Assembly (NCBI RefSeq): GCF_030144855.1
Contig: NC_082722.1
Coordinates: 20,956,001 to 21,020,000 of the forward strand
Direction: 5' to 3'
Length of the DNA: 64,000 nt
From: Hypanus sabinus
Taxonomy: Eukaryota
The stretch's first letter is position 1, and every line of letters starts with the position of its first letter. The notes beneath the pieces are model-generated. The model made no database searches and had not been told where the DNA came from. It was given only the letters and a program-made list of their open reading frames with translations. The translations under genes and the position numbers were made by a program. Positions 789 through 63,804 of the stretch are shown here, piece after piece.

Positions 789-902
789 TTAACTTGAATA
801 GGAATGTAAAATTATCCTGTCATTTATAATCAGTATTGTCGAATGTGAATCTGATAATGCCTTGGAAATCCTGATTCTCTCATTATCATTTCTCGTTTCA
901 AC
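789..902 (-). pseudogene. Gene B terminal-exon-like segment VETRN...DRIILHSYSS*
   Basis: ctctgcag|GTTGAA resembles the gene A aacag|GCTGAA; DRIILHS aligns with ERIIYSP; only 41 nt from the TM donor. Confidence 0.4.
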
Positions 903-943
903 CTGCAGAGGTAATAAATAGAAATGGTTGTCAAATCGTCCAC

Positions 944-1042
944 GTTTTTCCATAACTCCGATTCTTAGCAAAATTATAATCAGAATTACAATTGCCATTC
1001 CGCCCAATGCACATCCAAGAATCAGGGGATTATTGCTGTTTT
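944..1042 (-). pseudogene. Gene B transmembrane exon ENSNNPLILGCALGGMAIVILIIILLRIGVMEK
   Basis: ttttcaag| phase-1 acceptor; 99 nt to a weak C|gtggac donor, the same length as the gene A TM exon. ILGCALGG matches ILACAAGG. Confidence 0.8.
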
Positions 1043-1583
1043 CTTGAAAACATCAAAGCAGGAACTACGAAACATATATAGAGACCATGAGACAAGAAAG
1101 TAGACCATTTTAATGACCGAGGAACTCAGCCTTCTTTTATTTACTTTGTATCCAAGGCCTGAACAGATAAAGATTGCAAGAGATGCAATATATCACGGGC
1201 ATTAAGATGATGATGGGACTTATGGAGCGGAGAGATCATCCTATACAGTGCTTCTTTACAGTGCAACACACACACAATGCCAGAGGAACTCAGTAGGCCA
1301 GACCGCATCTATGGAGAAAAGTACAGTCGACGTTGCTTGGAGCTCCAAACAGCATTCTCTTGTCTGTGATTTGGTTCTTTACAGTGAGTATTTTTTTTTT
1401 CTTTGGAATAAGAGAGAGATTCTTTTTACGATGTCTTTGCAAATAGTTTGATCGCAGCTTCAAAATGACATGGTTTCTGTCCCTAAGCTGTCACTCGAAA
1501 ACTCTCTCAACAGATTCTATTAATAAACAAGATAAAATGACTTCAAGATGCATTCATAGAATATTAAAAAGCACAATCCGTAC

Positions 1584-1714
1584 CTTGTATCAGGAGACCA
1601 GGTACTTGGTGAAAACTGAAGAGACCAACGAGCAGATTTCGATTAAGTAATGAAACTAGGGCACTGGAAGACAGAATTCCAGGTTTAAGCACAGAGGCAG
1701 CTAAAGGCGTAGAA
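1584..1714 (-). pseudogene. Possible internally deleted C1 exon remnant of gene B
   Basis: Strong gcgcag| and CAAG|gtacgg sites at the expected position. STPL and IQG| echo PTPL and DQG| of gene A, but both Cys motifs are missing. Confidence 0.3.
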
Positions 1715-2149
1715 CTGCGCAAATAGTTTAAAAAGAACAGAATACCAAACAATAAATGCACATAAATATTATTTATAAATATTTTGAAACATAAATATGA
1801 TTTGAATATTTATAAAAGTGACCAACTTCAAAATTGTGCCAGATACTCCCACACTTTCCTATACAGTTCAGATGCTTCGATTCTCAACTTATATGAAATA
1901 TAACGATATTTGTCTCGGATGTTTGCAATGAATATAGATACACAACATTAGGAGGTAGAAATTACAAAAACGTGCCAGCCTCTCAGTGAAGAAACTGCTG
2001 AGTACTGACTTTTATCACGACAAGGAATCTATCTCTGGCCGAAGGAAACAGCCACTTCGTATTCTCAGCCGGAATCTTGTCTACATATGCCTGATGGACC
2101 ACTTTTTTAGTGATTTTTTTTTCCAGGTCCTCACCTCTCATCGCATTGA

Positions 2150-5100
2150 TATCATCTGTGTTCCGCATGTTAGACGTGACCTCCACTGTGAGGACCGAGA
2201 CAAAATAGTCTTCCTGAGCCTCGGCCATTTCCTCCAAGTTCACTTTGGCCACCCTTTTCCGCTTTATATAATTATGAGAACATTTTCTATCCGTTGTTAT
2301 ATTTTGTACTGGTGGTCCGTGTTCATAATCTAGCTCCCCTTTCTTCATTGCTGGCTTAGTGGTTCGCCTAGTGCTTGCTTTATAAGGTTTTCCCAATCTA
2401 TCAGTTTCCAACTACTCTTGGCGGCTTTGTACGCACGAGCTTTTAGTTTGATGCCTTCCTTTATTTCCTCAGTTATCCATGGCTGGCTCTCTTCACTCTT
2501 ACTGTCCTTGCTTTTAACTGGAACAAACTTTTAATCAGCAGCATGAAAATTCTTGTTCAGAGTTTTCTACTGTTCACAACAGTCTCACCATATAGCCTAT
2601 GTTCCCTGTCTACCATATCCACTCCTCCTTCATCCTATTTGCGCCCTCCATTTGTAGAAGAAACTCAGTCATCCTCTGATCACTCTTTCCAAGTGGATCC
2701 CTAAAAGCAAGATGGCTAATTCTCCTTGTCTCAGCACAGGAGAATCAGATCCCAGACAACATATTCCCTTGTTAGTTCAGTTACAAGTTCAAGCAACCTA
2801 TCATGGATGCATTCTATGAAGTCCTCCTCAAGACTGCCTCGACCTACATGATTCAGCTAATCTATATGCAAGCTAAAGTACCCCACGAGAACAGCTGTGC
2901 TATTCTTACATGTCTCAGGTATTTCTCCTTTTACTACCTTATGAGCGTTTCGTGAGATACCAAACAGGTGTAAACCACTTTGCCCTGAGCAGGCTGCGCA
3001 TCTTCCAAAGTACTGGAAGCATCCTAAAATCTTTCAGAAGTCTCACTTATTTCTGTTTCTATTATTGTTGCGTCCATATTATTTCTTTGTCAAAGATGTC
3101 TAATTTCTTCGGTTAACATGCTGCAGTTTTACACATCAGTTTCGGGGATGTAGGTGAAGTTTCTTCAACACGAATGATTTTCAGTTTTCAGCGGAGTTGG
3201 GGGAGCTACAACTGAAGAAAACGCGACATTAAATACTAGCAATTAGAAACGTAGAATAATAGAAAACCTACAGCACAGTACAGGCTTTTGGCCCAAAATG
3301 ACGTGACGAACATGTCCTTAGCTTAGAAATTACCTGGGGTTACACTTAGCCCTCTATTTTTCTGAGATCCTTATACCTGCCCAGAAGTCTCCTTAAAAAA
3401 ATCCTATCATATCCGGTTTCACCACTGTCGCTGGCAGCCCATTCCATGTACAGGCCACTCTCTGCGTTAAAAACCCCTGAAATCTCCTCGGTACCCACTT
3501 CCAAGCACCTTAAAACTGTGCCCTGCCGTGCGAGTTATTTCAGCCCTGGTAAAAATGCCTCTCACTATCTACACAATCAATGCCTCTCCTCAACTATTAA
3601 ATGTCTTTGAGGTCACCTCGCATCCTCCGTCGCTCCAAGAAGAAAAGGCCGACTACACTCAACCTATTCCCATAAGGCATGCTCCTCAATCCAGGCAGCA
3701 TCCTTGTAAATCTCCTCTGTGGTTTCCTCATCCTTCTTATGATGAGGCGACCAGATCTTAGCACAGTAGACGAAGTGGAGACTGCATAGGGTCCTATATA
3801 GCTGCAACATTACCTCTCGACTTCTGAACTCAACCCCACGATTAATAGTGCACAATGCACCATATGCCTTCTCAACAACAGAGTCAACGTGCGCAGCGGC
3901 TTTGACTTTCCAATGGACTCGGACCCCAAGATCCCTCTGATCCTCCACACAGCCAGGAATCTTATCATTAATACTATGTTCTGTCATCATATTTGACCTA
4001 CCAAAATAAGCCACTTCACACTTAGCTGTATAGAATTCCATCTGCCACTTCCGTGCCTAGTTTTTACTAATGTCTTGCTGTAACCCCTGACAAGCCTCTA
4101 CACTATCCACAATACTTCCGGCCTTTGTCATCAGCTAAACTACTAACCCATCACTCCACTTCTTCATTCAGGCCATTTACAAAAATCACCAAGTATAGGG
4201 GTTCCCTGAACAGAACCCTGAGGCACACTTCTGGTCACCGACCTCCATGCAGAATATGACCCGTCTGCAACAACACTTTGCCTTCTGTGGGCAAGCCAAT
4301 TCTGGATCCACAGAGCAATGTCCCCTTGGATCCCATTCCGCCTAACTTTATCAATAAGCCTTGCATGGGGTACCTTATCAAATACCTTGCTGAAATCCAT
4401 ATACACCAGATCTCTTGTTCTCCCTTCATCAATGTGCTTAGGCTCATCCGCAGAAAATTGAATCAGACAATTGAGGTCTTAATGTTCGACCTCCCTTTGA
4501 CAAGGCCAAGCTGACTATTACTATTCATATTATGCCCCTTCAAGTGTTCATTTATCCTGCCTCTCAGAATCTTCTCCATCAGCTTACCAATCATTAGCCG
4601 TAAGACACAATAGTCTATAATTTGTTGGGCTATTTCTACTCACTTCTTGAATAACGGAACTACATCAGCAACCCTCCAATCCTCCGGAACCTCTCCCATC
4701 CTCATTGACAATGCAAGAATCTTCGCCAGAGATCTTAGCCAGGCTTAGCAATCTTCTTCCTCTCCTCCCACAATAGCTTGGGCAGCATCTCGTCCAGTCC
4801 CGGTGACTTATCCAATTTGATGCTTTCTAAAAGTTCCAGCTCATCCTTTTTTTCTTAATATCTACATGCTCAAGCTTTTCAGTCTGCTGTAAGTCGTCCT
4901 GACAATCCCAAGATACTTTTCCGTAGTGAATACTGAAGCAAAGTATTCATTAAGTATCTGTTCTATCTCCACTTGTTGCATACACACTTTTCCAGTGTCT
5001 CTCTTGATTGGCCCTATTCTCTCACGTCATATCCTCTTGCTTTGCATATACTTGTAGAATGCCTTGGGGTTTTCCTTAGTCCTGTTGGCCAAGGCTTTTT

Positions 5101-5781: not shown

Positions 5782-5819
5782 CTGTCCTGACGAAGGGTCT
5801 CGACCCGAAATGTCGACAG
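5782..5819 (+). ncRNA. Minimal type-I hammerhead ribozyme motif in a Penelope-terminal repeat
   Basis: CTGTC-CTGACGA-A-GGG(TCTCGA)CCC-GAAA-T-GTC^GACAG, with a perfect 5-bp stem I. Confidence 0.65.
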
Positions 5820-6357
5820 TGCTTCTCCTTATAGGTGCTGCCTGGCCTGCTGCGTTCCACCAGCATTTTGTGTGTGTTGCTTCGCTTTCATCAAATGGCT
5901 TGTGATTTGCCCTTCAACACAATCTGTCTACAGCTCCTAACCTCTAATTAGCAAACGCGAATGAAATTCTTCGTCTAAAATTAGCTGTTTCAGTTCATCC
6001 GCTGGTTAAAGCATTTGATTGTATAAAGTTCTTGGGGCTAGTTCAGGTATAGTTAAAGGCGGGGAAGGGTGTGACGATGTGTAGGAATATAGGCTTAAGA
6101 AACATATGGTTGGAAATATCAACGGTGTAAAAGAGAAGTGGAGCAAAAGCCAATCTCCTGAATCACATCAAAATAATAAACGGAATAATCAGAACAAAGA
6201 AGAAGTGATATTTTCATTTTTTCTTAAAAAGCTGCAAAGCGACTTAGTGACACAAATTCTTAATCAGCAATACCTCTTCACAACGCTTCCACAATCTTGG
6301 CTTTGGCTTTGGCTTCAAAGAGATGAAAATTTCCCACTCACTATAAAAGACACTTAC

Positions 6358-6663
6358 TTAACACAATAAGCTGAGTGCCTCTTCCATTTCTGAATATTAG
6401 TTGTTGAATTTACACTTGACAGCAATACACGCCGACGTCTGCGAACCTCACAATCAGAAGGGTAAATGTGCCCTAGCTGTTGCTTACCTTGATCTGATTT
6501 CTGCTGTCTCGTTCTATTAACGCCTTCTGACCCTCCCTCCACCACGAAACTTCAGCATTATGATGTAGTAATGGAAATTTGCAGAACATGGATTCAGTTC
6601 CACCGATAGAGACTTTTTAGATTGAAGGGAATTGTTCCACTTTAGCCGAAGTTGATTTTGCAG
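6358..6663 (-). pseudogene. Gene B V(J) exon, pseudogenised paralog of the gene A V exon
   Basis: Same 306-nt length with intact tcag| and A|gtaagt sites. CKFPL, WWREG, ADVGVYCC and NGRGTQLIV are retained; 38/101 identities in an ungapped manual alignment. Stops at 6617-6619, 6473-6475 and 6410-6412. Confidence 0.92.
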
Positions 6664-7739
6664 CTGACAAAGCATAAAGGAAAATTATGAAAACAGTTGG
6701 ATTCACTGGACAAAGAATCAACAGATAAAATATACAGAACAATGGTATTGGAATTGGATGTTTGCCATGGCTAGATTTGCAGTGCGTAGCTAATGTATAA
6801 TATTATACATCCACCGAGGTTGCAAATCAGTGTGTTCTGTCTGAAAGATAGAAATTCATAGGACATAATAAACAAGTAATAATTATGTTTGAAATCACGT
6901 GGTCAATGGTATGTCGATGCCGTGGGCACAAACAAATCCGCAGATACTGGAAATACCGAGCAAAGCCCATAACGTGCCAGTGCAGCTCAGTGGGTCATGA
7001 GGAATCAATGGTGAAAAACAAGCAGTCGATGTTTCTGGGTGAGATCCTTCTTCAGGACTAGAAAGGAAGGGGGAAGAATTCACAATAAGGAGACAGGGGA
7101 GGGAAATGTATATAAGCTGGCAGGTGATAGGTGAAGGGAGGGAGAATTAAGGAGATGGCACTTGATAGGTGATTTATATTCCGTTTCGGTCGCCTCAAAT
7201 CTGCTGATATGTACTTTGATTTCTCGAACTTCCAGTAATTTCTCCCGGACGCCTTTCATCGTTTTCCATTTCCCATTCTGGGTCCCTTTTTATCCATTCT
7301 CTGCTCCTCACCTCGCTTTGTTATTGCTCTTCCTTCCCTTTCTTCAATTGCTCTCCTATGAGATTCCTTCTCATTCAACAGTTTAACACTTGCAACATAT
7401 CGTCTTCGCGCCCATCTGAATTATCACAGGGCGTTTTCTATGCTCCAGTCTTTCCCGGTTCAATGCGTCTCGATGATATCAGTTGTAGCCCGTCATTGCT
7501 CAATCCTTAATTTATCCATGTATTTCGTCCAATGTCTGTATCTATCATGATCCAAACTGAAATCTATCTTCTCGGTCATGATCTACATCACTCCTTTTTT
7601 TTGCCAGTTTATTGGCATATTTGTATGTCTTCTAACTGCTGTGAACAACTCTCTTGCAGCGCTGTCAATTCGCCTACCACTCTCAGCGTAATATACCTGC
7701 CTCGCAAACTTTAGTTATTTTATCTTCTCTTATCTCAAG

Positions 7740-13942: not shown

Positions 13943-15285
13943 ACTTATTTCGCTGCCAATATTGCCTCTACATACTCCCTACCTTCCTTACTACCGCACC
14001 TTATCCACCAACCACCCTGACCTGATGAGCAACAATAATGTATTATCCCACCAGGCTGCTCACCCACTTGTGCCACACATACATCGATTTGGTCCGGAAT
14101 TAATGCGTCAGTTTACGACCATTGGCCAAAAAATGCTGGGCATAATTCAAATTTATTCTGTTCCATTGGGCAATTAGGCAGTTACTAATCGCCGAGGAGC
14201 TCCGTCGTAAGCACCATATTAATCGAGGGTACACATCTAGCCACGTGACTGCTATATAAATCTACTTTCCAACGTCCAGGATTTTCAGTCAAATGTTATG
14301 ATTAGGCTAAACCTGAATTCGTTTAATGTGACCATGTGTGCACCTCCTCTGCTTCAATGTGGGTTTGGACAGTAACAGTTACAATGCATTTCACCTGCCT
14401 GTGGAGGGAATATCTTGGGGGGGGGGGGTGTCGGCGGTACTGAAGACAGAGTAGGCTTATATTATAACTGGGCACTGTTCAATGATATAGCACAGGAGAA
14501 TGTGGTTGAGCATATCAGACTTTATCCTCTTGAATGTCCGGGCAGTAGAGAGAGGCGGAGTGGATTACTCCCAATCTTATTCTTAAGTTTCTTACTTTTA
14601 TATTTTCCAGTGATAATCGCCTCCAATAAATCGAACACGAATTTGAAACTTTAACTCCTAACTTGTAAATGTGATATCGGTTAATAATCTTTGTCTAGAT
14701 TGAAGAAATAAAACGAAGCAATTCCTCGGGCCTGCACTCATTGATAGTCTATAGCTCTAAACTGCAGTTGGATCCTCAGCTTCGCAGTTTCTTTGATGTA
14801 TTTACATCAGTGGACAATGTATCGTGCTTTTGACGTGTGGATGCTGAGGAGTTTTTGGAACGGGAAGCAGCAGAGCAGCGTAACTCAGTTTGTCAACTCC
14901 ATTCCATTTAGACTATTTCATAATCAGCGGTTAATCGAGAATTTACTGAGTTGAACATGTTGAATCAATAATTCTAAATTAAACCAGTGAAGTACTCAAA
15001 AGTTATTAATTTTAGATTTCTGCCATTTCACACAAAATCTATGTCAACACGTTTTCCAATTGATTTCCTTTTTGATTTATTTGGTATTTCAACTCCATGA
15101 TCCTGTAGAATCATGAGCGTTCCTTTCATTACTTGAAATGAAGTATAACAAAATCGAGTTAGGAGAGTAGGTAACTGCTTGAAGCAATAGCTATAGTACA
15201 AAATATATCACTAACTCAACATACAAGCGTGTTTTTGTGTCATATGTGTCAGTTAGTCGCAAACTGTTTAGCTTATAGATCTTAC

Positions 15286-15385
15286 GGTGTTTAACTTATA
15301 CATCACAGTCACAGCTGCCAAGAGAACTCCAAACAGATACTGTAATCAGTGAATACCGCACAACTGATAGAACGAACGTTGGCAT
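15286..15385 (-). pseudogene. Leader exon copy 1 MPTFVLSVVRYSLITVSVWSSLGSCDCDV*VKH with premature stop
   Basis: Signal-peptide-like, 100 nt to a phase-1 donor C|gtaaga, TAA at 15296-15298, lies upstream of the gene B V exon. Confidence 0.55.
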
Positions 15386-17126
15386 TTTGTTCATTCATGT
15401 CCTATGGTTACTGTTTTGTCACAGTTTGGTATTTTCATGAATAACACCAATGTTCTGTAGGATCAGTGTTTCTATGTTATTATCAGATATTCGTCTTCAT
15501 TTTGGAGCTGATAATGGGCGTTGAAAAGGATGGCTATTCTTAGTTTCATTCGTTTTAGTGTTTCCTCGTTTGCAAATTACATATGAACGTCATAATCCTT
15601 CTGGCTGCTCCCATCTGGCTCCTATCTCCTTGATTATGCCTAAATTCCAGTCGTTTGATTCTCAATTGCTGCTAGTTCATTGAATTACAGTACACCTGGT
15701 TTGCATCTGAGACTGCAGGATAAGAACTCTGGCGTAACAACCACAGGTCGCCAGTTCTTTGGTCGATTACCGTGTGATGACTTCGTTTCCCGATTGCTTA
15801 GAACCGTTGGTTCTAAGTTCAGCTCTAGTTTCAAGTTATTCCATGAGAACCCCGTCTCCGTGTCAAGACTCCATATCAGAACTCCATGTCCAGCTTCCTC
15901 CTGCTTAGTCGTTCCACATTTGCGACGGTGCAAACACCTCTCAACCCCATCTCCATGCCTGTGCCCTGCACTTGGAGTCACCCGCAGTCACTCCTTGTAA
16001 AAATAAATTAAATGCATTAAGCAAGAGAAGAAAGATAATCTCGAGGGATTCTGCAGATGCAGGAAACCTTGAGGAATGCAAAGAAAATGATGATGTAATT
16101 CATTAGGTAAAACCTTTTTTCAGAAGGTAAATAAACTGTCCATCTTTCTGGCCGAAACGCTTTACAGGAGAGCAAGAAGTCAGAAGCTAGAATAAGAGGG
16201 TGTGGAAGGAATACAAGATGGCGGGTGATAAGAGACACCATGTGATTAAGAGGTTGTGTGGATAATAGGGGAGAGAATGGTGTAGAAGCTGGGAGTTGAT
16301 GAATGGAAAAGGAAAAGGGTACAAGAAGGAATCAGATAGGAGGAGAGAGTGGACCCTGGAAGAAATGAAATAAAGAGGGGCACGAGTGGTAATGATTCTT
16401 GTCATATCTCAGATTTGTTTTGCTTTTTTGGGCAACTTAGCAATTATTAACCGCTGAGGAGCTATGTGCAAAACACCATATTCTTCGAGAGTACTCATCT
16501 AGACACGTGATTCATATATAAATCTACTTTCCAACGTCCACATTTTTCATTGAAATGCTGTGATTAGTCTAAACTTGATTTCCTTTAATGGGACAATGTG
16601 CGTATCTCCTCTATTTCAATGTGGTCTTGGACAGGTACAGACGTTGCAACGATTTATTTTGCCTTTTTGGTGCCCTGGGATTTCTGTCACTACCATATGA
16701 TAGTGCAGTTGTATTATACTGCTAACTTTGAGCAAAAAGCCGTGAACGTACAAGAAACAGAAGAGTACTGAATTATTTTCATCATACGATATTTACTAAT
16801 CAATATTCAAGCACAGAGGTGTTCTCGCGAGAGCATTTTGCGATTTTTTTTCACATCTTCAAATCTACATTTTCTTCTATTGAACGTTGACATAAGTGAG
16901 CAAGAAAAGCTGTTCAGCAGGCGTTTGCTTTTGCCCTGCAAATAACGTTTCTGGCGCTAGTGGTGACGAATATCTTGATATTTTTTTCATCCTCTGAGGA
17001 CTGTGGGCGGAATATCTTGGGGGCGAGGCGGTACTTTAGGCTACGTAGGTTTATTTCCTGGAATGATCGGAGACTGTTCAATGGAGATTATGACTAAGCA
17101 GTAAAGAAAGACAGAATGGCTTATTC

Positions 17127-17377
17127 AGAATCTTATTCCTTTCTTTTTACAATATTTTTATTCAGAAGAAAAAAAAAGATTTACAGAGTGCAACACATAG
17201 ATACATCTCAACATAACTTGAGTACATTAATATATTGTAATAAAATTGATCAGAATGTTATAGCATAACATATAAAGGTATATCACACTGTAATCAAAAA
17301 TTTAAAGATAGGTCATACATCATAACATAATTTTTATATATATATATATATAAATTATATATAAGAATCTTATTCCT
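17127..17377 (-). mobile_element. 223-bp insertion flanked by a 14-bp target-site duplication, L1-3'-end-like, includes (TA)n
   Basis: agaatcttattcct at 17127-17140 and 17364-17377; the paralogous block has a single site near 14572. Confidence 0.7.
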
Positions 17378-18082
17378 AATTTAATTACTTTTACTTTTCC
17401 CAGTGATAATCGCTTCCAAGAAATCGAAGACGAAATTGATCCATTATCTTCCTAACTTATGCATGTTATATCGATTAACAATCTTTGATTGCAAGACATG
17501 AGAAAAAGCAATGCCTAGGTCTGCACTCCTTAATAATCTATAGCTCTAAACTATAGTCAGATTCTCAGCTTCACAGTTTCTTTGATGTATTTACATCTGC
17601 GTACAATGCATGTTGGTTTTGATGTTTGGATGCTGAGGTGTTGTTGGAATCCGGAAGCTGCAGAGAAGCGTAAGTCAGTTTGTCAGCTCCATTTCTTTTT
17701 GTCTGTGAAAATATTTCAGTATCCGTGATTAATCAAGAATCCATTGATTTGAACAAATCCAATCAAAAATTGTAAAGTGAATTAGTGATTCACTCATAAG
17801 TTATCAATTTTAGATTTCTGCCGTTTTGCTCAAAATCTATGTCAACATGTTTTTCATTTTTTTTCTTTTTGATTTATATGGTATTTCAATTCCATGATCC
17901 CGTAGAATCATGAGCGTTTCTTTAATTACTTGAAATGAAGTTTAACAAAATCGAGTTGGCAGAGTAGGTAACTCTTTAAGGCAGCAGGTATAGTGCAAAA
18001 TATTTTGCTAACTCAAAACACAATAGTATTTTTGTGTTGTATGTGACTGATTGCGGCAAACTGTTTCGTCTATAGATCTTAC

Positions 18083-18191
18083 GGGTGCTTCCTCCGTCCC
18101 ACCTGCCAACAGAACTCCAAATGCAAACAGACACAGTCATCAGTGGATACCGCACAACTGATAACTGAAAGGTGGCACTTTGTTCATTCAT
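18083..18191 (-). pseudogene. Leader exon copy 2 MNEQSATFQLSVVRYPLMTVSVCIWSSVGRWDGGST (open, orphan)
   Basis: Homolog of copy 1; 109 nt to the same phase-1 donor C|gtaaga. Confidence 0.5.
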
Positions 18192-20668: not shown

Positions 20669-20806
20669 TTATTTATGGTAATCTCTCTGCTTTACCGGAG
20701 AATAGATAATGCGCTCTTCTTGTTGTCGATCCTTTTGAAGTCCTTTGCTCCCCGTCAAATTTAGTGAAGCATAGGCAGTGGTGTGCTCCACAGAAGCATG
20801 TTCAGC
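20669..20806 (-). CDS. Gene A terminal coding exon AEHASVEHTTAYASLNLTGSKGLQKDRQQEERIIYSPVKQRDYHK*
   Basis: ttttctaacag| acceptor, phase 0, two Tyr motifs (TAYASL, IIYSPV), stop at 20669-20671. ATTAAA at 20646-20641 is a possible polyA signal. Confidence 0.85.
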   Translation of the reverse strand, partial: AEHASVEHTTAYASLNLTGSKGLQKDRQQEERIIYSPVKQRDYHK

Positions 20807-48540: not shown

Positions 48541-49145
48541 TGAGCTAACCTCCTCTTCCCCAGTCTCTTCCATTCCGTTCTCGCTTTTGTTCTCGTTTTT
48601 GTTCGCACTTTCAACACCAAAAGCAGTCGATTATTCGTTGGCCGGAGGCACTTCCAACCTAACGGTCGGCTCAAGGAAGGAGTAAATGATACTTCGAAAT
48701 TCACTATTGTCCCTCCTGAACCTAACTACGTTTAAATCAAACTAACAATATTTTGGACCTATTTTCAGTCATAGCTCGCGTTCCGGAAGTTTGCTTCGAT
48801 TTTCAGCTTTTCGTCCTCTTTAGAACAAGTACATATGCGTATGTTGTAAGTTCCTGTTTCTGACTAAATGCAGATGCAATTTTGATACTGAGAAGGTGCA
48901 GAGAGGCCGAGGCGAACGTGTTAATCTCGTAAATTGTGACCTGTGAAAGTCAGTCATATTGTTCATTATCCTGCGGCTGCAGAGGCGCCCGAGTCTGAAT
49001 GAAGGCGGTTGCATGTGTATCTGTCTCTCATTGTTCTATTTCTGATTTTCCATTCGGGCTGAAAACTTGCGCTACGGTCTATCTCTCACGCACAGAGCAA
49101 TGCGATGCTAATGTTGCAAATGGTTATTTTAATTATCACCGATGG

Positions 49146-50460
49146 TCAAATTGACATGCTGTTTCTGTGGGTTGTATATTCAGCCTGTTTGAATAATTGT
49201 ATAAAAAGTTTGGTAAATAAACTTTGGTAAATGCCACCTCATACCTAGAAGATTGAAAGGTGGAGCTTTTTACCTGGGTATCAGTGCCTTCCTGTTTTGC
49301 AGTAACTTCGGTCATTGTTGGAATAACCCAAATACGAAGTACTGCTCCAACTTTCGAGGCATTATCTGGGTATAAAAATTTTCGTGACGCTATTATGGAA
49401 TTGAGAAGATTTAGATTTTCCCGGTTTTGTCCCCCTTATTAATTTAAAAACTTTAATTTCAGTGAAATCATCAACCATCTTCTAACACAAACCCTAGATG
49501 TAAAGCAAAGATAATGGTGACTGTGCAAAAGGGCAAAATGGGTGATCGGGTGAAACTTGTTTGCATTTCCAGACATGTAGTTTTGTACATGTACGCTTTG
49601 TAGTTAGTGAAATGTTGTAAAATATCATAGGATTTACATTGTCGTACCGCGTTAAAATGTTTGTTTTCACAATGTCAAGTATTTTTTTTAATTACTTATT
49701 TCTAGCAATATACGAATATCTACAAAAATTCCCACATTAAGATCCACGCTCGACATTTTTGCACAGTCACTTCGAACTGAGGAGCCATTTGTATTCCCGC
49801 CAAACTTTGAAAGGTTATTCCGGTGGGAAGTTAAAATGTTCATTGTAAATATTTGACAACTAAATATGTACTGCAGCCAAAATGGCTTTTTTTCTGTTTA
49901 GCAAAGTACTAAGATTCTATAGAGTTAACATGTTATTTGCTTCGCTTAATGCAGTACTTCTGCTCCTAATTCAACAATTTTATAAACTAAAGAAACCGTT
50001 TCATCTCACCAAATTGGTTTCATTCTCACCTCCAATCAGTCATTTATGCTCGCACATCTAAGGGGGTGGGGGCGATCCGATGATAATTTTATCATGATGC
50101 AAACTCGATTTTATTACCCAAAGTAAGATCGCCTGAAGTAACAATCTGAACGTGTGTAGCAGTACCCGTTATTCTAATATTGTGTTTAGTGTATTACATT
50201 CACCTTCATCTTTCGTGTATCTTATCCCCTCTCAGCTAAAGTGTGCGTATTTTTCAAGTCTTAGTTACATTGTGCTTTTAGCTACTTCTGAAGTAGCGGT
50301 TAAAAAATATACTTCAAGCTATTTACTTTTTTTTTTGCTCTGCACTCGATTCTGAAGATAACCATACGGCTCAGTACGATGGTTCTACCTCCAGGATAGT
50401 GCCACTGAAGGGATTTCTTCATACATGAATAGGTATTGTGTGTATAGCTATATCAGGTAC
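49146..50460 (-). pseudogene. Gene C remnant: TM-like exon about 50327-50460, phase 1-to-0 exon 49274-49365, terminal exon start 49184
   Basis: caag|GTACC exon with a GGRTIVL..VIFRI core and one stop; an open 92-nt exon DNASKVG..TQ|gtaaaa; aacag|GCTGAA followed by an AATTTGAC match to the gene A last exon, then frameshifted. Confidence 0.5.
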
Positions 50461-50699
50461 CTTGATGACAGACTAAATTCGAATTGACTTACTTTCCTCC
50501 TGTTCGCCATAACGAAGCAGTAACACCAACCGAGCATCTAGCCTGAGGAAAATATTGTCTTCTCATTGACGTGACTATATAATAGCGATCATTGAAAATG
50601 TTCTTTTGTTAATTTCAATTCAGGTTCACAATATTATGAAAGCCATGAACTTTTCATACAGTATGTACTCATGCTGTAGGTCACAACGCGCTTCTATGT

Positions 50700-51250
50700 T
50701 TGCTGTTTATATAATTTGGAGTATTGTGTACATTTCTGATCACCGAATTATAGGAAAGATATTAACAAAATAGACAGAGTACAGAGAAGATTTACTAGAA
50801 TGTTACCTGGACTTCAGCACCTAAGTTACGAGGGAAGGTTGAACAAGTCAGGTCTTTATTCTTTGGAGCGTAGAAGACTGAGGGGGACTTGATAGATGTA
50901 TTTAAAATAATGAGGGCGATATATCGAGCTGACGTGGATCGGCTTTTTCTATTGAAATTAGAGGAGATTCAAACAAGAGGACATGATTTTAGATTTGGGG
51001 GCAAAAGTTTAAGGGTAACTCGACGGGGAATTTCTTCACCCAGAGAGTGGTAGCTGTGTGGCATGAGCTTCCAGTAGAAGTGGGAGAGGCAGGTTCGGTA
51101 TTGTCATTTAAAGTAAAATTGGATAGGTATATGGACAGGAAAGGAATGGAGGGTTCTGCGCTCAGTGCGGGCCAGTGGGCCTAGGTGAGAGTAAGCGTCG
51201 GAACGGACGAGAAAGGCCGAGACGGCGTGTTTCCGTGCTGTAATTGTTAT
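50700..51250 (+). mobile_element. CR1 3' fragment
   Basis: gagtacagagaagatttactagaatgttacctgg and the typical CR1 3' UTR. Confidence 0.85.
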
Positions 51251-51439
51251 TTGGTTATATGGTTAACTTCAGTTATGTCAGCAGTCATCGTTCTAGTTTG
51301 TTTTTCGCTTAAGGTGGAAACTCTAGAGAATTCAAGACGGTGTCAATTTGGGTTATGCTTCCCCCTGGAACGTTGGAATACAGAGTTTTGTAAAACACTT
51401 CAAAAGCTTCTTGAATTTCACTTAGCTTATTTTTTATCA

Positions 51440-52890
51440 TTTTCGTTCCTGTGTCCCTAATTCTATGTATTGTATTTTCTGCTATCTTTTTTTTTCAGTT
51501 TCCACGCAAGTATTTTCATAGATTTTGATCCACTTTCATAATGTCTCTGTTTCAGAAACGTTAATTTTTTCCTGGTTTCTTGCGTAGCCAACCTATTAAT
51601 TCCTAATTCTTTTAATTCCCCCTAATGTATCCGATGCCAAATTCAATTTGTGTTTTTTTCTCTAGTTCTTTCAGCCTATTTTGTAATACCACTAATGTTT
51701 TATTCCTTATTTTCCTTATATGAAGATATCGTTATAATTTTCCCCCTTAAAACTGCCTTCAGAGTATCGCATGGAGGTAAAACATCTCCATTATCATTAA
51801 ATTCTAAGTACAGACCAATTTAAAAAAAAAGTTCCTTCAAGTATGGATCATTGAATAAACTTGAATTTCGATTCCAAATAGTATTCTTTGGTTGTAGGTC
51901 AAAATCAACACACAAATATATAGGTGCATGGTCACTTATATCTATTGTCTCAGATCCACAGATGTTTATTTTGTCTTTGTCCTTTCCAAAAGTTATGAAA
52001 TAGTCAATGCTTGTATAGACAGAATGGGGAGCAGAATCTCTTCTGTCGGGGAAAAGGTCCGTTCATATATCAATTAAACCACCATCCTCAAAAAGTGTAA
52101 TAACATTCTTATGTAAAGACTTTGGTTCGTAGGTTTTTATACTGGAAGAGTCTAGTTTGGTTATAATTGTAAATTTAAGGCTCCCCCACATGTCAGGAGA
52201 CCCTCTGTTTCTGTTACCATAATATCAGTAATTTTCTGAAAGAAACCAATATCACTTCACGGGGGTGAATATATATTCAATAGAGTAACTGAATTTCCGT
52301 CTATATTCCTCCTTACCAGAAAATATCTGCCCTCTTTATCTCCCATTTCAAATTTTTGTTTTCAAAATTTAGCTTAATTGAGATAGGAATAACAACTCCC
52401 CTGCTATGTCTTGATTTATATGAGGAGAAAAACAAATTAGTGAAGTCCATTCTCTTTAGTATTTTGTGCTCATTATCACCTAAATGCGTTTCCTGTAAAT
52501 ATACTACATGGACTTGTACTTTTTTTTGCATTTTGGATAAAATTCTATTACGTTTGATTGGTTTTAATAGACCATTCACGTTGAAATAAATTAATTTTAC
52601 TTTGTACTTAGCCATCTGTATTAATCTGTCAATGTATCATTGAAATCAGCAAAATAAAACTTAATCGATCTACTCCCTGAGCAAATAAGAACTATGAAAC
52701 GCAAATAATAACAAAGACGGCAATGGAGGTGTGACTCCAAGGCTGAGATCTCTGGTAGATGACCCTGGAATGAGCTAGAGGAAATGTCTAGCTATTTGGG
52801 ATAACCCCTCCTACTTGTGAGTTGAGGGCCCCCATTGCAGTATTCATAAAAGTCAGTGAACAAATCCATTACACAGATAAGATTTCCCTG
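51440..52890 (-). mobile_element. L1/Tx1-type LINE, ORF2 endonuclease region
   Basis: FNVNGLLKPIKR..VYLQETHL..GVVI (52313-52615). Confidence 0.85.
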
Positions 52891-53058
52891 NNNNNNNNNN
52901 NNNNNNNNNNNNNNNNNNNNNNNNNNNNNNNNNNNNNNNNNNNNNNNNNNNNNNNNNNNNNNNNNNNNNNNNNNNNNNNNNNNNNNNNNNNNNNNNNNNN
53001 NNNNNNNNNNNNNNNNNNNNNNNNNNNNNNNNNNNNNNNNNNNNNNNNNNNNNNNNNN
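52891..53058. other. Assembly gap (168 N)
   Basis: Run of N. Confidence 1.
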
Positions 53059-53394
53059 AAAGGAGTAAGTGAGTGAATAAAGAAGAATGACTGAGTGATC
53101 AGAAATGCACATAATAAGTATTTCTCGGGATATGTATATCACCATCTACTTTTGCTTCCGATCAGTTTCTCACCATTCTCTCCAAAAGTGTTTTTCAACT
53201 ATTTGTCAGAAATGTTCTGTTCTACTTGCTTCTCTTCTGTACAGTTGTGAACTCTGGTAACTTCAGGAATACTGTGAGGATCCATGGTGATATTTCCTGT
53301 TGTCAATTTAAATTCTCCCTCATATCTCCAAAGAAGCAATCCTTCTGAATAAAAAATACGGCCATTTGATACAGCATGTATTAACCTCCGGCAC

Positions 53395-56200
53395 ATCCCC
53401 GTTTCTAATGACATCTTAAAGATCTCCGTCAGAACTCCTGCTATTTCTACACAAACTTCCCTCAAGGTCCTGGAGAGTATCCTGTCAGGACCCGGAGATT
53501 TATCCACTTTTAAATTTCTTAAAAGCGCCAGTACTTCCACCTCTTTAATTGTCATAGGTTCCATAACTTCCTTACTTGTTTCCCACACCTTACACAATTC
53601 AATATCCTTCTCCTTAGTGAATACCGAAGAGAAGAAATCGTTCAAAATCTCTCCCATCTCCCTCGGCTCCACACATAGCTGACCACTCTGATTCTCTAAG
53701 GGGCCAATTTTATCCCTCACTATCCCCTTGCTTTTAATATAACTGTAGAAACCTTATGGATTTACTTTCATCTTATTTGCCAAACCAACCTCGTATCTTC
53801 TTTTAGCTTTTCTAATCTCTTTCTTAAGATTCCTATTACATGCTTTATATTCCTCGAGCAATTCCTTTACACCATGCTGCCTATATCTATTGTAGACATC
53901 CTTCTTTTTCCGAACCAAATTTCTAATATCCCTTGAAAGCCATAGTACTTTCAAACCTTTCTTTCCTTTCAACCTGAACATAAAGATTCTGTACCCTCAT
54001 AATTTCACCATTAAATGACCTCCATTTGTCTATTACATCCTTCCCATAAAACAACTTAACCCAATCCACTCTCTCTAAATCCCTTCGCATCTCCTCAAAG
54101 TTAGCCTTTCTCCAATCAAAATCCTCAACTCTTGGTCCTGTCCTGTCCTTCTCCATAATTATATTGAAGCTAATGCTGTTGTGATCACTGGACCCGAAGT
54201 GCTCCCCAACACATACATCTGTCAGCTGACCTATCGCATTCCCTGACAGGAGATCCAACACTGCCCCATCTCTAGTCGGTACTTCTATGTATTGTTCCAA
54301 AAAACTATCCTGCACACATTTCACAAACTCTAAACCATCCAGCCCTTTTACAGAATGAGCTTCCCAGTCTACGTGTGGAAAATTAAAATCTCCCACAATC
54401 ACCACCTTGTGTTGACAACAAATATCTGCTATCTCCTTACACATTTGCTCTTCCAACTCACGCTCCCCATTAGGTGGTCTATAATACCCTCGTATCAGTG
54501 TTACTACACCTTTCCCATTCCTCAATTCCATCCAAATAGACTCCCTAGAGGAGCTCTCTAATCTATCCTTCCAAAGCACCGCCATAAGATTTTCTCGGAC
54601 AAGCAATGCAACACCTCCTCCTCTGACCCCTCCTACTCTATCACACCTGAAGCAACTAAATCCAGGAATATTTAGTTGCCAATCACACCATTCCTGCAAC
54701 CATGTTTCACTAATAGCTACAACATCATAATTCCAGGTATGAATCCACGCTTTAAGCTCATCCACCTTTCTTACAATGCTCCTAGTATTAAAATAGATAC
54801 ATTTAAGATACTCTCCACCTCCTCCTCTCTTTTCATCCCTAACAATGCATTCAACTTTATTATCTTTTTCTTACTTCTCCCCTACATCTCTGGGCTGAGC
54901 TCATCCCTTCTCCATCACCTGCCTTTCCTCCATCACACACTGCCTATTTACTTGCTCTACTGGTGAACTAACCTCCTCTCCCATAGTTTCCTCAAATTGA
55001 TTCCCGCCCTCCCCCATCTTGCTAGTTTAAAGTCTGCCCTGTAGCCCCAGCAAACCTCCCCGCTAGAATATTGGTCCCCCCCCCCCAGTATTCAGGTGTA
55101 ACCCGTCTTTCTTGAACAGGTCATGCGTGCCCCAGAAGAGGTCCCAATGATCCAGAAACTTGAATCCCTGCCCCCTGCTCCAATCCCACAGCCACGCATT
55201 CATGCTCCACCTAATTCTATTCCTACTCTCACTGTCGCGTGGCACAAGCAGTAATCCCGAGATTACTACATTTGCGGTCCTTCTTCTTAACTGGATTCCT
55301 AACTCCCTATACTCTCGTTTCAGGACCTCTTCCCCTTTCCTACCTATGTCATTGGTACCTACCTGTACCACGACCTCTGGCTCCTCACCCTCCCACTTCA
55401 GGATATCTTTGACGCGATTAGAAACGTCCCGAACCCTGGCACCAGGGAGGCAAATTACCATCCGGGACTCCCGATCACCTCCACAGAACCACCTGTCTGA
55501 ACCCCTGACTATCGAGTCCCCTACCACTATGGTCCTCTTTCTTCTATCCCTACCTTTCTGAGCTACAGGGCCGTCCTCTGTGCCGGAGGCCCGACCACTG
55601 TCACTTCCACCAGGTAGGCTGTCCCCCCCAACAGTACTCAAACATGAGCACTTATTGTCAAGGGGTACAGCCACTGGGGTATTCTCTAGTACCTGCCTCT
55701 TCCCCTTCCTGACCGTGACCCACCTATCTGCCTCCAGTGGGCTCGGTGACCACCTGCCTGTAACTCCTCTCTATCACCTCCTCACTCTCCCTGACCAGGC
55801 GAAGGTCATCGAGCTGCAGCTCCAGTTCCCTAACTCGGTCCCTCAGGAGCTGCAATTCGGTGCACCTGGCGCAGATGTGGACGTCCGGGAGGCTCGGAGG
55901 CCCTAGAACAACAAGCTGCCCTCACACTCATACTTCCCGAATAACTGAAAATAACAAGGAGAACTAAAATATAAGCCGACTGTGTCCTCTTCTGCATAAG
56001 CCCTCTGAACCCAAGCCCTACACTCTGCTCCCGGCTCACTCCGCTGCCCGCTTCTAAAGGCTGCGTTCTTTTGAGATCTTCCCTCCTTCCCAGGCCTTCT
56101 TCACGCGCCTGCGCAGTCCCGCCTCTCAGATCTCGGATCTGAGAAGCAATTGAAAATGGCCGCCGCCGCACTTCCTCTCAAAGCCTCGCTGTCCTCTTCC
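53395..56200 (-). mobile_element. CR1 LINE with 5' UTR, ORF1 (SGNH esterase-like) and ORF2 endonuclease; 3'-truncated
   Basis: IVVGDSIVRG..VGTNDIG (55063-55674), AISETWLQ..IVGDFNFP (53923-54765), KSPGPD (53199-53720). Confidence 0.93.
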
Positions 56201-57799
56201 AAAAGAGGACATAAGAAATTTTATTTCTTATTATTTAAATCATTCATATTTTCATACTTGAAACTTTATAAATGATTTAAACCCGTTAAGAAGAAATGTT
56301 TTTACAATCTAGTTAAGACCAGAATTAGTCTGTCAAATTAGTTCTCCGTTACCTGTGCACCCCCAAAACCCTAAATACCACCTATAATGGTAAACTCTTA
56401 AAATATACATGGCCTCGTCCTATAGACTTTCCCAGATATTTTCATGATCTCGAATACCGAGAATTTCTACAGATAATATTGTTCTGATATCTCCCCAAGA
56501 TTTCTAACGGGTTCTGCCAAGTTACAACTCACCACACAATCAACACAAACAGAAGAGCATGGAAGAAAAGTAAATGTAGAAGGTTTTGGAAATACTTGAT
56601 TAGTTTGACACCTTCTGTGAAGAGAAATGTAGGCTAGAGAGCTTTCACTACGCAATAAACCCGAAAAAAAACTTAATCTGGCATTTTTCATAATTGCTTC
56701 CTGAGCTGGTGAGGAGTCCTCATTTGCAACATGGAAGGCATTTGCTTAGATGCACACACAACTCAAGCACAACAAATACTACCCAGCTTATTTACTACCT
56801 TGTTTCTTTGCATTTGTCATTTATAAATATAATGAAACTTCATGATCCTATAACTATCTCCAAATGCCAGCCAATTCGCCCATTAGTACAATATGTGTAT
56901 TTTTTCCTGCATCGCTCCCCTTGAGCCCTCATGCTCGAACTATTTCAAAATTTAACTCAAAAAAACTTCAATTCTTATTTTGTTAATCGACTCTGCTGTG
57001 GAACATTTCTGATATGCATTGATAATGCAGTTTTAAGTACATGTATCGTGATAAAATGCCAGTGCCCACAATATCAATTTAGCCTTTGTTTTAACTGAGG
57101 TTGCGAAAATTTCTTCCGTATTTAAATTGAAATATGTCAATACTTTTATCTACGATCCAGGTCTGTATTCTTGTTACTGCACACATGACAACACGGTAAC
57201 ACACACTTAATTCGCCATTCAGCATTCTGAGAATTTAAACGTACAGAAAATACTATGCATATATACACAATATTTTTCTAGATTTTTTTTTAGGAATTGC
57301 GCTGACATTCATGCAAGGCAATTTGTCCTCAGTATCTCATCTTAACCTTAAGTGATAACGCCTACATTCTGAGGGGCGACTGCTTTAGCTGAAAATAATC
57401 AACAATTTTTCCAACTGGACATTTCCACGATAAATTGGTTCGGCGGATTAAAGGAGAATTTCTTTCCTGGCATTGAATATTTAAGATCTGAAGAACGGTC
57501 TTGGTCTGAAATCTCGACTGTTTTATTCAATTCCACAGATGCTGCTTAATGTGCTGAGTTGCTACAGCATTTGATGTACTGTAGCTCTGGATTTTCCACA
57601 TCAGCAGAAAATACTGTGTTTATAAATTTTATTCTGCCTAGGATTGCAACATGCAATTATTGGATGTTCTGAGAAAAATATTCGAATATTTAATATAGGT
57701 GTATAACTGATATAAAAGTGATTGATATACGTTTGTTGTTTCTGAATGACATATCGTGAGTACAGAAACACATACTTTTCAGAAATACGTTTATACTTA

Positions 57800-60125: not shown

Positions 60126-60704
60126 TGCTATTATTTCGTGCTGGTAAAGCTTGAAGTACGAGAAGAGCCGAGCAAGGTAATTTCTCAACTGCTTGCAAAA
60201 TTCAGACTGGTGTTTAGCCTTGTGGCTTTCAATAAATACTACTGTGAAGACCTAATTATTTAATGCTTTTGTGTAATGTCTTTATGATGATATCAGGACT
60301 GGGACAGGTACACCCTGTTCTTGTTCCGTAGTATTTCAATATTCTCTTTTAATTTCTTTTGATTTTCAATCATTGATTTCTGTATATTGTGTGTGCTTGG
60401 TCTCGCTATATCTATTAAGTAAGTAGTGTGTGCTTGTTTACCGTGTAAAAGTTATATGCAAACGGTCATCATTAATTGTCTCATTTGTAATAATGGTTTA
60501 GGTGTTATATAGCTCGTTAGACTCTGACTCCCAAACTGAACCAGACACGTATTTATCATGAGGTATGGTTCCATTTCTGAGTTAGAAACTTAAATCAAGA
60601 TTTTGGTAAACAAACCGAAGGAAATCTGCAGATGCTGGAAATTCAAGCAATACACACAAATGCTGGTGGAACACAGCAGGCCAGGCAGCATCTATAGGAG
60701 AAGC

Positions 60705-60744
60705 ACCGTCGACGTTTCGGGCCGAGACTCTTCGTCAGGACAGT
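60705..60744 (-). ncRNA. Minimal hammerhead ribozyme motif
   Basis: ACTGTC-CTGACGA-A-GAG(TCTCGG)CCC-GAAA-C-GTC^GACGGT; 6-bp stem I, palindromic ACGT stem III, one stem II mismatch. Confidence 0.6.
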
Positions 60745-62414
60745 AGGTTTGTGTAAGTTGTCAGATTGACTTCAACTGCTGCACGTTCCTGTTATTTTGT
60801 TATTGCTTCTGTTTTTTCTTGGCATTTTCTTCATGAATCGTCTTACCTTTGTTCGTTTTCTTATTCTGTATTTTTGACATATTTTTTTCTGTTGACCATC
60901 TGGTCCACTATACCACAAAGAACTACATTGTTCTGAGAAGAGGTCTCCATTTCTGAACTAGGCGTTTAACGCTTCCTTGTTGCCATCAAATCTGCCTAGA
61001 TCCTGAGGATGTCTTCAAGGACGGTCATATTCTTTCACTGGTTATTTTCCTTCATCTGGAATGATAATTTCTTCATTTTTCTGCTCTGTGCTTTAATATC
61101 AGTTTACTGGTGTGTTGTTCTTATCAGAATTGCACGTGCTCACCTGAAATGCTGAATCCTGTTTTAATTGATGAAAGTATATCCTTAGAAGTTTCATCTG
61201 AACGTTGTACAAAATTTATTTATGCATGTCATTCCTTTCCCCCATTCTGTCCTAGGTAGTGTTAACCTAAGCGAGTTCGAATGCACATTGTGTTTTCAAA
61301 AAATTATAATTTTAATTCTTACTTTTCCTTGTAAATTTTCCATATGGGTTTCGACCCAATATATTATGCCAGTAGAATATGTTAATGGGTATTGTTATTA
61401 ATATTATTAGTATTATATAAGTACCATTATTGCCAACGTATGCGAATAGCCAGATATCTGGCGCCGAGTGATCAGAGATGGTTCCTATCAACATTTAACT
61501 TTACCATTGCCGAGTTCCGCAGCTTTTCGACTGACTGTTCAATTTTATTCCCCGTTAGAATCCGATCTTTGTGGAAAAATCATTGCAATCGTTGTTTGAA
61601 CCTCGCAAAAAAGCTCACACGAGCTAACTGTTGTTGGTACTGGTTTCTCTAACCTGGCATCAGGTAATTTTGCACACCCATCTACTTTAAGTTAAGCACT
61701 CCCTTTCAAATAGTCCATTTGCACGATGATAGTTTGTCTTGATATTTTCACGTTCTAAATGCACCTTTTAACCAAACTCCCGTTCTTGAAGTGTTCCTCC
61801 TGATTTGATTTGATGAACAGTGCTTTTAGTAGCCGTAATATTAAGCTAAAATTCACAGCGGTAAGAATAGTACTCAACAAAACGTGAATTAAAATCTTAC
61901 AAAGAATATTTAAAATTATAGGCAACTGTGCAATGGTTATTAACAATGACAGGGTAGTCCACATTAACAAGGACCAGTACTTCTGCATCAACAATTAGAC
62001 AGAGACGTAAAATACCTGAAGTTTAATTTAAGGTCCAGAATCCTGAAAATATATTTTCAGACGAGAGCAACAGTTTATAGAAGACTCAGCCAGTTAGATA
62101 ACATGAAAACAAAAACAATGTGCAGTGGAATAACATCAGACAGATTGTTCCGAGATTGTTAATTTACCTGTTCATACTTTCCTTTGTATAGCTTGTTATG
62201 ATGTGTGGATTACACAGCAATTCTCTTTTCATTGTTTTATTTTTACCCCTACCCCAATATGGAGGATTGATCTGTTAATATTACCTAATTCGTTGGTGTA
62301 AATATGGAACGGGCTATTTTCTCAGTAAATACCTTTTGACCATTATAAAGGTAGAAGAAGGATATACTGAGCAGGCAGAATTGTTTAACTTTGTTCTGTA
62401 TTTAATTTATTTGC

Positions 62415-62700
62415 AGAATGATTCGGCACAGAACTGAACCTTCCCGTCCAATGAGCAGCCCAAACAGCAACCTACTTACATAAATTCAGTCTAATCACAG
62501 GAGAATTTACAATGACGGATGAGCCTACTAACCGGTTCGATTTCAGACTGTCGGATGAAACCGCAGCACCCGGATGAAGTTCTCTCCGTTCACGGGGAGA
62601 AAGTCCAAATCCCTTAAAAATGGCGCCATAATTGAACTCTAAACTCTGGAACGCCCTGGTGTGACAGTGTGGCGTTAACCGTTATGCTACCGTAGCGACA
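62415..62700 (+). mobile_element. Degenerate SINE-like repeat
   Basis: cctactaacc..gaaaccgcagcacccgg..cacggggagaa pattern of elasmobranch SINE tails. Confidence 0.55.
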
Positions 62701-63548
62701 ATAATTTCGAAATCATACTAATTTATCTGAAAATAAGTCGCCTTTTTTACATAATCTTCTTTCAGCTATATTTGCACATGATATCATACTTACAACATGG
62801 TCGGGGGGGGGGGGTGGGTATTCAATGGATGTTGTCTCTGCTAGAGTTTATGACATTTTAAGAGAATGTTTTACAGGGATTGAACATTAATTTCATGCTG
62901 TCTAAACCAATCTGCCTCTCAAACTGAACTAAACGTTGTTTTATCTTTAGTCAAATTACAAATGGTGTGTGCCATACTGTAGCCTTTAGCTCCAGAAATA
63001 CTATTTATTCTTGGCGACAGTCGTTTAACATTCATTTCGTCGCCCCTTTCAGTGATTATGATGCCTTCCCGAAAATTCTAAATTACCAAAATAGCCTGTT
63101 GCATGGAAGCTCACTGCTGACGCCTTAAAAAAGGTGTTGATCAGTACATATTTTCAACATCGTGACCTATTTTGGTCTTATGGAAGGAATTACGTCCTGG
63201 GCCTGGAGAATGTCCACACGAACATGATTGCAGACATCAAATGATTAACAGGGAGGGTGTTGGATGTCACTGTACCTGTAGTGCAAGGAGTTCAGCAAAT
63301 CATAAACCCATAAGAGATAGGAGCTCAATTCGGTAATTAGTTCTATTGAGCCTGCTCTGCCGTTCAATCAAGGAGCATCCAATTTTCCTCTGAGTTTATA
63401 TCTCCTGCCTTCTCCCCGTATCCTTTCATGACCTGACCAATTAAGAATCTATCCACCTCTACTTCAAATATACCTAAAGTATTTGCCTTCTCAGCTCTCT
63501 GTGGTCAATACTTCCTCAGATTCTGAATTGACTCTCACTCTCCTCAAG

Positions 63549-63804
63549 GTACCCAATATAGCTATAGATATGATACCTACTCATATATGCAGAAATCCCT
63601 TCAGTGATACTCTGCTGGAGGTAGAGCCATGGTACTGAGTCGTATAGTTATCGTCAGAATCGAGTACAGAGCAAAAAGTAAGTAAATAGCTTGAGGTAGA
63701 TTTTGTAACCAGTACTTCTGAAGTAGCTGAAAGCACAATGTAATTCAGACTGGAAAGGTAAACACACTTTGGATGAGAGGGGATTAGCTTCACAAAAGAT
63801 GAAG
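63549..63804 (+). pseudogene. Gene D remnant: TM-like exon 63549-63677 and a possible small exon 63749-63804
   Basis: ctctcctcaag| acceptor, A|gtaagt donor, 129 nt, phase 1-1, GTQYSYRYDTYSYMQKSLQ*YSAGGRAMVLSRIVIVRIEYRAK. Inverted paralog of about 50040-50465. Confidence 0.5.

Follow-up and report, generated by a model that had tools for sequence, protein, structure and literature searches.

The 64,000 nucleotide stretch of Hypanus sabinus DNA analysed here (assembly GCF_030144855.1, NC_082722.1, positions 20,956,001-21,020,000 of the forward strand) is referred to as the window, and all coordinates are window positions. It very probably holds a short tandem segment of a multigene family within the immunoglobulin (Ig) superfamily, whose genes encode non-rearranging receptors with a V(J)-C1-transmembrane (TM) layout. 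On this reading the window contains one intact gene (gene A), one dead gene (gene B) and a dead copy of exon 7 of gene A, and two further segments (C and D) together with a set of 98-bp blocks are repeats. A preliminary description had proposed a birth-and-death cluster of at least two and possibly four related receptor loci. Birth-and-death evolution is supported for two loci and one orphan exon, not for four loci.

Gene A is an intact gene of seven coding exons on the minus strand (29133 to 17571), specifying a type I membrane protein of 346 amino acids (aa), which equals Mobula hypostoma XP_062923465 (P0002) in length. Its exons were defined by aligning ray family proteins back onto the window (Table 1), and 191 family and related proteins were mapped across the whole window in a translated search with a cut-off of E<=1. 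All junctions in the resulting model are AG/GT, giving twelve canonical splice sites, and the coding sequence is open over 1041 nt. The leader region (29056-29133) was matched by 17 family proteins, the best at 78% identity. Open reading frames (ORFs) covering the V exon (28911-28567) and the C1 exon (24267-23938) match Pfam V-set (E=6.9e-11) and C1-set (E=3.7e-10), respectively, bearing out the initial assignment of an intact gene, and every Ig hallmark residue is retained. The V framework, YYC and the J-like GSGSRLTVF are encoded without a break in one germline exon that ends at a GT donor; a single C1 exon lies between V and TM, and the TM exon follows it after 0.6 kb. The C1 domain is 92% identical to that of H. 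sabinus XP_059849430 (P0174) and 81% identical to that of Mobula XP_062923465, and the V domain has no close counterpart, being 54-69% identical to the V domains of the A-type clade to which gene A belongs (see below).

This model departs from the extent first given for gene A (20669-30207, with the tail in a single last exon). The leader was found about 1 kb further downstream, at 29133-29079, and the ATG at ~30207 was rejected because, unlike 29133-29079, it has no homology to family leaders; an alternative first exon for gene A may nevertheless exist. The same result splits the earlier observation of duplicated leaders, of which the one just located in gene A and a decayed one in gene B (~6826-6770) are genuine and the ATG near 30207 is not. 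At the 3′ side, homologues splice at the exon 6 donor after IIYSP and do not read on to the stop at ~20672-20670. The true last exon, overlooked before, sits 3 kb downstream of exon 6 and in tblastn is 96% identical to XP_059849430 and 85% identical to Mobula XP_062923465 (E ~1e-20 to 1e-24).

Two cysteines of gene A lie beyond the canonical Ig pairs, one in STCEV (28860-28850) near the mature N-terminus and the other in VPACFSY (23985-23975) in the last C1 strand. The latter is common to Hypanus XP_059849430 and Mobula XP_062923618 and is Ser in most relatives. This C1 cysteine could form an interchain disulfide.

The product of gene A would begin with a signal peptide and continue with a single V domain, whose J-like strand is built in, a single C1 domain, an uncharged TM helix and a tail with tyrosine motifs. 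In the predicted spliced protein the tail carries four of these (TAYASL, IIYSPT, LTYASL and ALYADV), comprising one canonical immunoreceptor tyrosine-based inhibitory motif (ITIM; LTYASL), one motif resembling the immunoreceptor tyrosine-based switch motif (ITSM) and two degenerate motifs. The second reads IIYSPT when spliced, the canonical IIYSPV occurring only in the read-through frame of exon 6, and the last has Ala where relatives carry Thr. Judging from these motifs and from the behaviour of ITIM/ITSM receptors such as SIRP-alpha, we infer that the phosphorylated tail would attract phosphatases of the SHP type and thereby inhibit the cell bearing the receptor. An AlphaFold2 (AF2) model of the ectodomain of the Mobula orthologue reached a predicted local distance difference test score (pLDDT) of 89.6, and among solved folds its nearest neighbours were light chains of antibody Fab fragments (Foldseek E ~5e-15, 20-24% identity).

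Gene B (~6826 to 830, minus strand) is a clear pseudogene, as had been described, with lesions in every exon. It lies ~11 kb downstream of the last exon of gene A, on the same strand and with the same exon order. Within-window tblastn searches from gene A matched its V exon (6694-6353, E=2.9e-21), C1 exon (3221-2943, E=1.2e-6) and TM exon (1043-936, E=3.6e-5), and chance cannot plausibly account for three collinear matches on the same strand. The start codon is lost, at least six stops and two frameshifts interrupt the reading frame, the C1 exon is truncated, its last strand and donor being replaced after 2943, and the frame is broken between TM and tail. Substitutions and indels occur throughout the exons, which makes sequencing error an implausible cause. 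The V exon is 62-70% identical to the B-type proteins P0028, P0020 and P0200 (Hypanus XP_059849401 and Mobula). Identity between genes A and B is 39% in V and 50% in C1, and the two are old paralogues belonging to different lineages.

A 39-codon ORF following the B-type TM donor (949-830 in gene B) is open in gene B, Hypanus XP_059849401 and Mobula XP_062923614, where it is 69-85% identical and ends at the same stop. Its conservation suggests either a real read-through isoform or slow decay of an intron.

The window also contains a third receptor remnant, absent from the preliminary description, which is an orphan copy of gene A exon 7. Two head-to-tail units of ~2.3 kb (14133-18766 overall) doubled only exon 7 and its flanks, and this duplication is exon-level, not gene-level. 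In the copy the splice acceptor has gone through an 8-nt deletion, a further 1-nt deletion shifts the frame, the last tyrosine is changed to Ser and the stop codon is missing. The pattern in the window is one of ordinary turnover by duplication, divergence of V domains and loss, and a tandem duplication of 2.3 kb between A and B left the dead exon behind.

Both genes belong to a family of wider occurrence. With the C1 exon as query against 1.84 billion representative proteins, the search returned ray proteins of 285-346 aa at 72-81% identity, which NCBI loosely names ‘SIRP-alpha-like’, ‘tyrosine-protein phosphatase non-receptor type substrate 1-like’, ‘NCR3LG1-like’ and similar (automatic models). 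Members include Mobula hypostoma XP_062923465, H. sabinus XP_059849429/430 (A-type; the V domain of XP_059849430 is truncated) and XP_059849401 (B-type), and the family is distributed over rays, sharks and chimaeras. Its signatures are WW(R/K)EG in the V domain, PPTPL where C1 begins, CKTAAFYP and Y(I/T)CLVSH. Gene A follows the family plan of a leader, a single VJ exon, a single C1-set exon, a TM exon and short cytoplasmic exons, with phase 1 junctions up to the TM; gene B has the same exon order, and its V exon is also 306 nt.

In a tree of 40 V+C1 ectodomains, gene A fell within an A-type clade (support 100/100; Hypanus, Hemitrygon and Mobula) and gene B within a B-type clade (100/97; Narcine, Hypanus and Mobula), the two being sisters at 98/91. 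Both are nested in a batoid group that excludes the shark and chimaera relatives. The A-type clade is poorly resolved and consists mostly of species-specific groups, in which gene A forms a long branch with no clear orthologue. Four B-type lineages (two per Mobula species, one intact Hypanus gene, and gene B) form a polytomy, and the tree does not assign gene B to either of the two Mobula B-type lineages. Among 153 A-type pairs the V domain was less conserved than C1 in 142 (mean identity 64.7% vs 77.8%). H. sabinus family proteins map to one 85.9-Mb chromosome, with accession numbers 849401 and 849429-849441; numbers so nearly consecutive suggest further neighbouring paralogues, whose putative order is read from these numbers.

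Tandem paralogues in the same orientation with at least one pseudogene, and lineage-specific gains and losses that blur orthology across species, are the hallmarks of birth-and-death evolution found here. That part of the earlier proposal stands, on two loci (one of them dead), a partial duplication and V divergence; its extension to four loci does not.

The extension depended on segments C and D, described previously as TM/tail-like remnants in opposite orientation. We took them to be 50020-50475 on the plus strand and 63530-64000 on the minus strand because the preliminary description ended at 63804 and these form the only inverted pair with frames resembling TM and tail. The two are 84.5% identical to each other. 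None of the 191 proteins matched either segment at E<=1, although the same set matched the exons of A and B 13 to 433 times each, and a Pfam search of C and D found no match. Repeat depth was measured over 48000-52800 at 85% likeness, using four sequencing runs (reads and contigs) of three other organisms. Each run covered C with 6-8 distinct contigs, every one 5-12% diverged from the window. Raw-read depth over C was 6-11 (in a sample of ~1.9 Gb, roughly half-fold) and reached hundreds to thousands over adjacent pieces of long interspersed nuclear elements (LINEs), and those flanks of C that are unduplicated in D were equally multi-copy. The runs come from other organisms, so the depth of C gauges related copies elsewhere and not copy number or spread in this genome. 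The multiple copies in three other organisms show a repeat shared across species and argue against membership. C and D are therefore repeats unrelated to receptors, and the possibility of four loci falls with them.

Several points weigh against the reading of the window as a piece of a receptor cluster with one working gene and unrelated repeats. The cluster was judged inside the window only. Two of the four tail tyrosine motifs are non-canonical. No RNA run was listed with the gene A V exon, which does not mean that none exists, and no protein identical to gene A was found in public sets with queries that excluded the full spliced protein. An open frame alone is weak functional evidence, as a recently silenced duplicate could stay open. 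As to C and D, their coordinates are our guess, the preliminary description having given none; the copy number of C was measured outside this genome and is modest (tens, not thousands), and C may, as a minor alternative, be a locally amplified segment.

The first set of points bears on whether gene A is itself a young duplicate, open yet silent, which would leave the window without a working receptor gene. We regard this as rather unlikely. The missing protein and RNA matches are compatible with silence, as are the long terminal branch of gene A, its modest V identity to relatives and the Ala in its last tail motif. However, RNA runs for H. sabinus are missing from the index, so the empty result is no evidence of silence, and all seven exons are open with canonical splice sites and intact Ig hallmarks, whereas gene B and the exon-7 copy next to it illustrate how fast unconstrained copies decay here. 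The second set concerns whether C and D, instead of being transposable elements, are non-coding parts of a segment co-amplified with the receptor cluster, the tens of copies then reflecting local segmental duplication. The depth of C, far below that of the flanking LINEs, and a copy number comparable to that of family genes per species would fit this idea, but we hold it to be improbable: within the window nothing resembling C is found close to either gene or to the dead exon, the likeness between C and D stops sharply against different flanks, and flanks of C absent from D are just as multi-copy. Finally, that C and D derive from the TM/tail ends of two additional, oppositely oriented genes, making four related loci, is very improbable indeed, since their short open frames, which contain hydrophobic stretches and ITIM-like strings (LSYIVL, LNYIVL), and their mutual identity have to be set against the lack of any match to the 191 proteins or to Pfam, the absence of V, C1 or leader remnants anywhere in 30.6-64 kb, the diverged variants of C in three other organisms, and the chance occurrence of ITIM-like six-letter strings in many frames of the window.

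Table 1. Positions of receptor exons, remnants, repeats and the assembly gap in the window.
Feature	Position	Strand	Remarks
Gene A exon 1, leader	29079-29133	-	start codon, 18 codons + 1 base, GT donor
Gene A exon 2, V domain and J-like end GSGSRLTVF	28572-28877	-	306 nt, phase 1/1
Gene A exon 3, C1-set domain	23952-24245	-	294 nt
Gene A exon 4, transmembrane	23244-23342	-	no mid-membrane charge; 83% to XP_059849430
Gene A exon 5, cytoplasmic	22608-22651	-	44 nt, phase 1 to phase 0; 88% to XP_059849430
Gene A exon 6, cytoplasmic, TAYASL and IIYSP	20696-20806	-	donor GT 20695-20694; 83% to XP_059849430
Gene A exon 7, true last exon, LTYASL and ALYADV	17571-17702	-	acceptor CAG; stop
Tandem units, head to tail, ~2.3 kb	14133-16383 and 16395-18766	none	aligned blocks 72-80% identical
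Dead tandem copy of gene A exon 7	14785-14927	-	lesions relative to exon 7
Gene B leader remnant	6770-6826	-	Met to Thr at start, TAA 6805-6803
Gene B V exon	6358-6663	-	306 nt as in gene A, splice sites retained, stops 6619, 6475, 6412
Gene B C1 exon	2943-3205	-	frameshifts ~3185 and ~3090, stops 3115 and 3026
Gene B TM exon and read-through tail ORF	830-1042	-	tail ORF 949-830, frame differs from TM
Segment C	50020-50475	+	one copy of a low- to middle-copy repeat
Segment D	63530-64000	-	inverted copy of C, runs off window end
98-bp repeat copy upstream of gene A	29782-29878	+	13-copy repeat; likely the ‘promoter-like block’
98-bp repeat, other copies (1)	1263-1339, 5784-5880, 6960-7058, 18467-18550, 23849-23941, 30435-30523
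98-bp repeat, other copies (2)	30512-30579, 37197-37262, 38790-38887, 40381-40462, 57487-57578, 60647-60741
Assembly gap, 168 N	52891-53058	none	repeat-rich non-coding DNA

The pattern had been likened to the KIR, NITR and SIRP paired-receptor clusters, and this comparison holds for the mode of evolution and for SIRP as the nearest named family, but not for the domain types of KIR and NITR or the three-domain plan of SIRP. Gene A and SIRP both have a J-like strand in the V domain, C1-set domain(s) after it and four tail tyrosines in motifs of the xxYA(S/D)(L/V) kind, and both belong to a multigene cluster whose V domains diverge and whose members differ in their tails. In contrast, SIRP-alpha, -beta and -gamma have three domains (V-C1-C1), whereas this family, including orthologous proteins of 344-350 aa, has two, and no partner with a lysine in its membrane segment is present in the window. 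By sequence, the C1 exon of gene A matches SIRP (E=1.8e-9) no better than it matches Ig constant domains (E ~1e-13). Kinship to SIRP, judged by sequence and layout, is best described as that of the nearest named family whose three-domain architecture is not shared.

Gene A resembles antibody light chains and T-cell receptor (TCR) chains in its two-domain V-C1 ectodomain. It differs from them in that V and J are joined in one germline exon, where rearranging receptors have separate segments, so that no rearrangement signal is needed, and in having its own TM and a tail with tyrosine motifs; moreover, the TM lacks the charged residues that TCR chains use for CD3 binding. UrIg and UrIg2 of cartilaginous fish likewise have a non-rearranging VJ exon followed by C1 (PMC12227049; PDB 9dmx), and the C1 exon of gene A matches a UrIg2 chain at E=6.7e-11. 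UrIg2 of elasmobranchs is antibody-like, with a V-C1-C2-C3 arrangement and Fc-like dimers (PMC12227049), whereas gene A has a single C domain in a V-C1-TM arrangement with an inhibitory-type tail. KIR/LILR and teleost NITR also form tandem clusters with pseudogenes and inhibitory or short-tailed variants. However, KIR/LILR consist of C2/I-type domains and NITR of V plus an I-type domain, none with a C1-set domain, and KIR and NITR are for this reason analogies in evolutionary mode only.

A search of the available literature found no paper describing this V(J)-C1 receptor family of cartilaginous fish. The family consists of non-rearranging V-C1 receptors shaped like antigen receptors, with inhibitory-type tails, in the oldest jawed vertebrates, and it bears on the relation between SIRP-like and antigen-receptor chains. 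For the window itself, the value of the analysis lies mainly in annotation: a corrected seven-exon model is provided for a receptor gene not found in the searched public protein sets, a pseudogene and an orphan exon are documented beside it, and two false loci are removed. As a cluster it is one more example and establishes no new principle.

Whether the A-type and B-type genes form paired receptors was considered separately. The 64-kb window contains no short-tailed partner with a charged TM. In Mobula, A-type ectodomains that are 90-96% identical are joined to an inhibitory tail in P0167 and to a B-type, Arg-containing TM (ILIFRSALGG) in P0172 and P0176, all of these being automatic models; the set looks like an inhibitory receptor and a possibly activating counterpart produced by exon exchange. 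That B-type genes are short-tailed was not upheld as a firm claim: in one B-type model from Mobula birostris the TM exon is spliced to ITIM-bearing exons, and the short B-type tail may for that reason be a read-through isoform or a modelling artefact. It is conceivable, though unlikely, that A-type and B-type genes constitute a system of paired receptors in chondrichthyans, with nearly identical ectodomains placed on different signalling ends, the window then recording loss of the B-type partner in this lineage. Their coupling would arise by exchange of TM exons between lineages, or by splicing versus read-through at the TM donor. We treat paired receptors as a lead, not a finding.

The duplicated promoter-like blocks of the preliminary description turned out to be an interspersed repeat of 98 bp, present 13 times across both strands of the window, and provide no evidence of locus duplication. 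Several copies are intronic, lying inside the V-C1 and C1-TM introns of gene B and in intron 3 of gene A. The copies at 30435-30523 and 30512-30579 overlap in inverted orientation and form a ~140-bp palindrome upstream of gene A.

The DNA around the assembly gap is non-coding and rich in repeats. Apart from cross-hits to reverse transcriptase, none of the 191 proteins gave a family-related match in 30.6-64 kb, and Rfam, tRNA and tandem-repeat scans of the window returned nothing relevant. The nearest receptor exon is more than 23 kb from the assembly gap, and no reading frame depends on the gap. Its flanks have no open frame in any of six frames and no likeness to each other or to any receptor exon, and an ORF listed across it (52792-53145) was discarded as an artefact of N translated as X. 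The scaffold join at this point matters only for how D is linked and oriented with respect to the other features.

To the left of the gap, the DNA up to 52800 is repeated in high copy, with depths of hundreds in a run of roughly half-fold coverage. To the right of the gap is a LINE on the minus strand that encodes a GDSL-esterase ORF1 (55063-55674) and an endonuclease (53923-54765). This element (53199-55674) also contains the start of a reverse transcriptase, homology to which ends near 53400, ~340 bp from the gap. Over 48000-52800, 5-12% of 31-letter words are present in the runs of each of at least 11 differently labelled organisms, no run exceeding 12%, and the LINE families at 48000-48640 and 50580-52800 are thus near-unchanged across several species.

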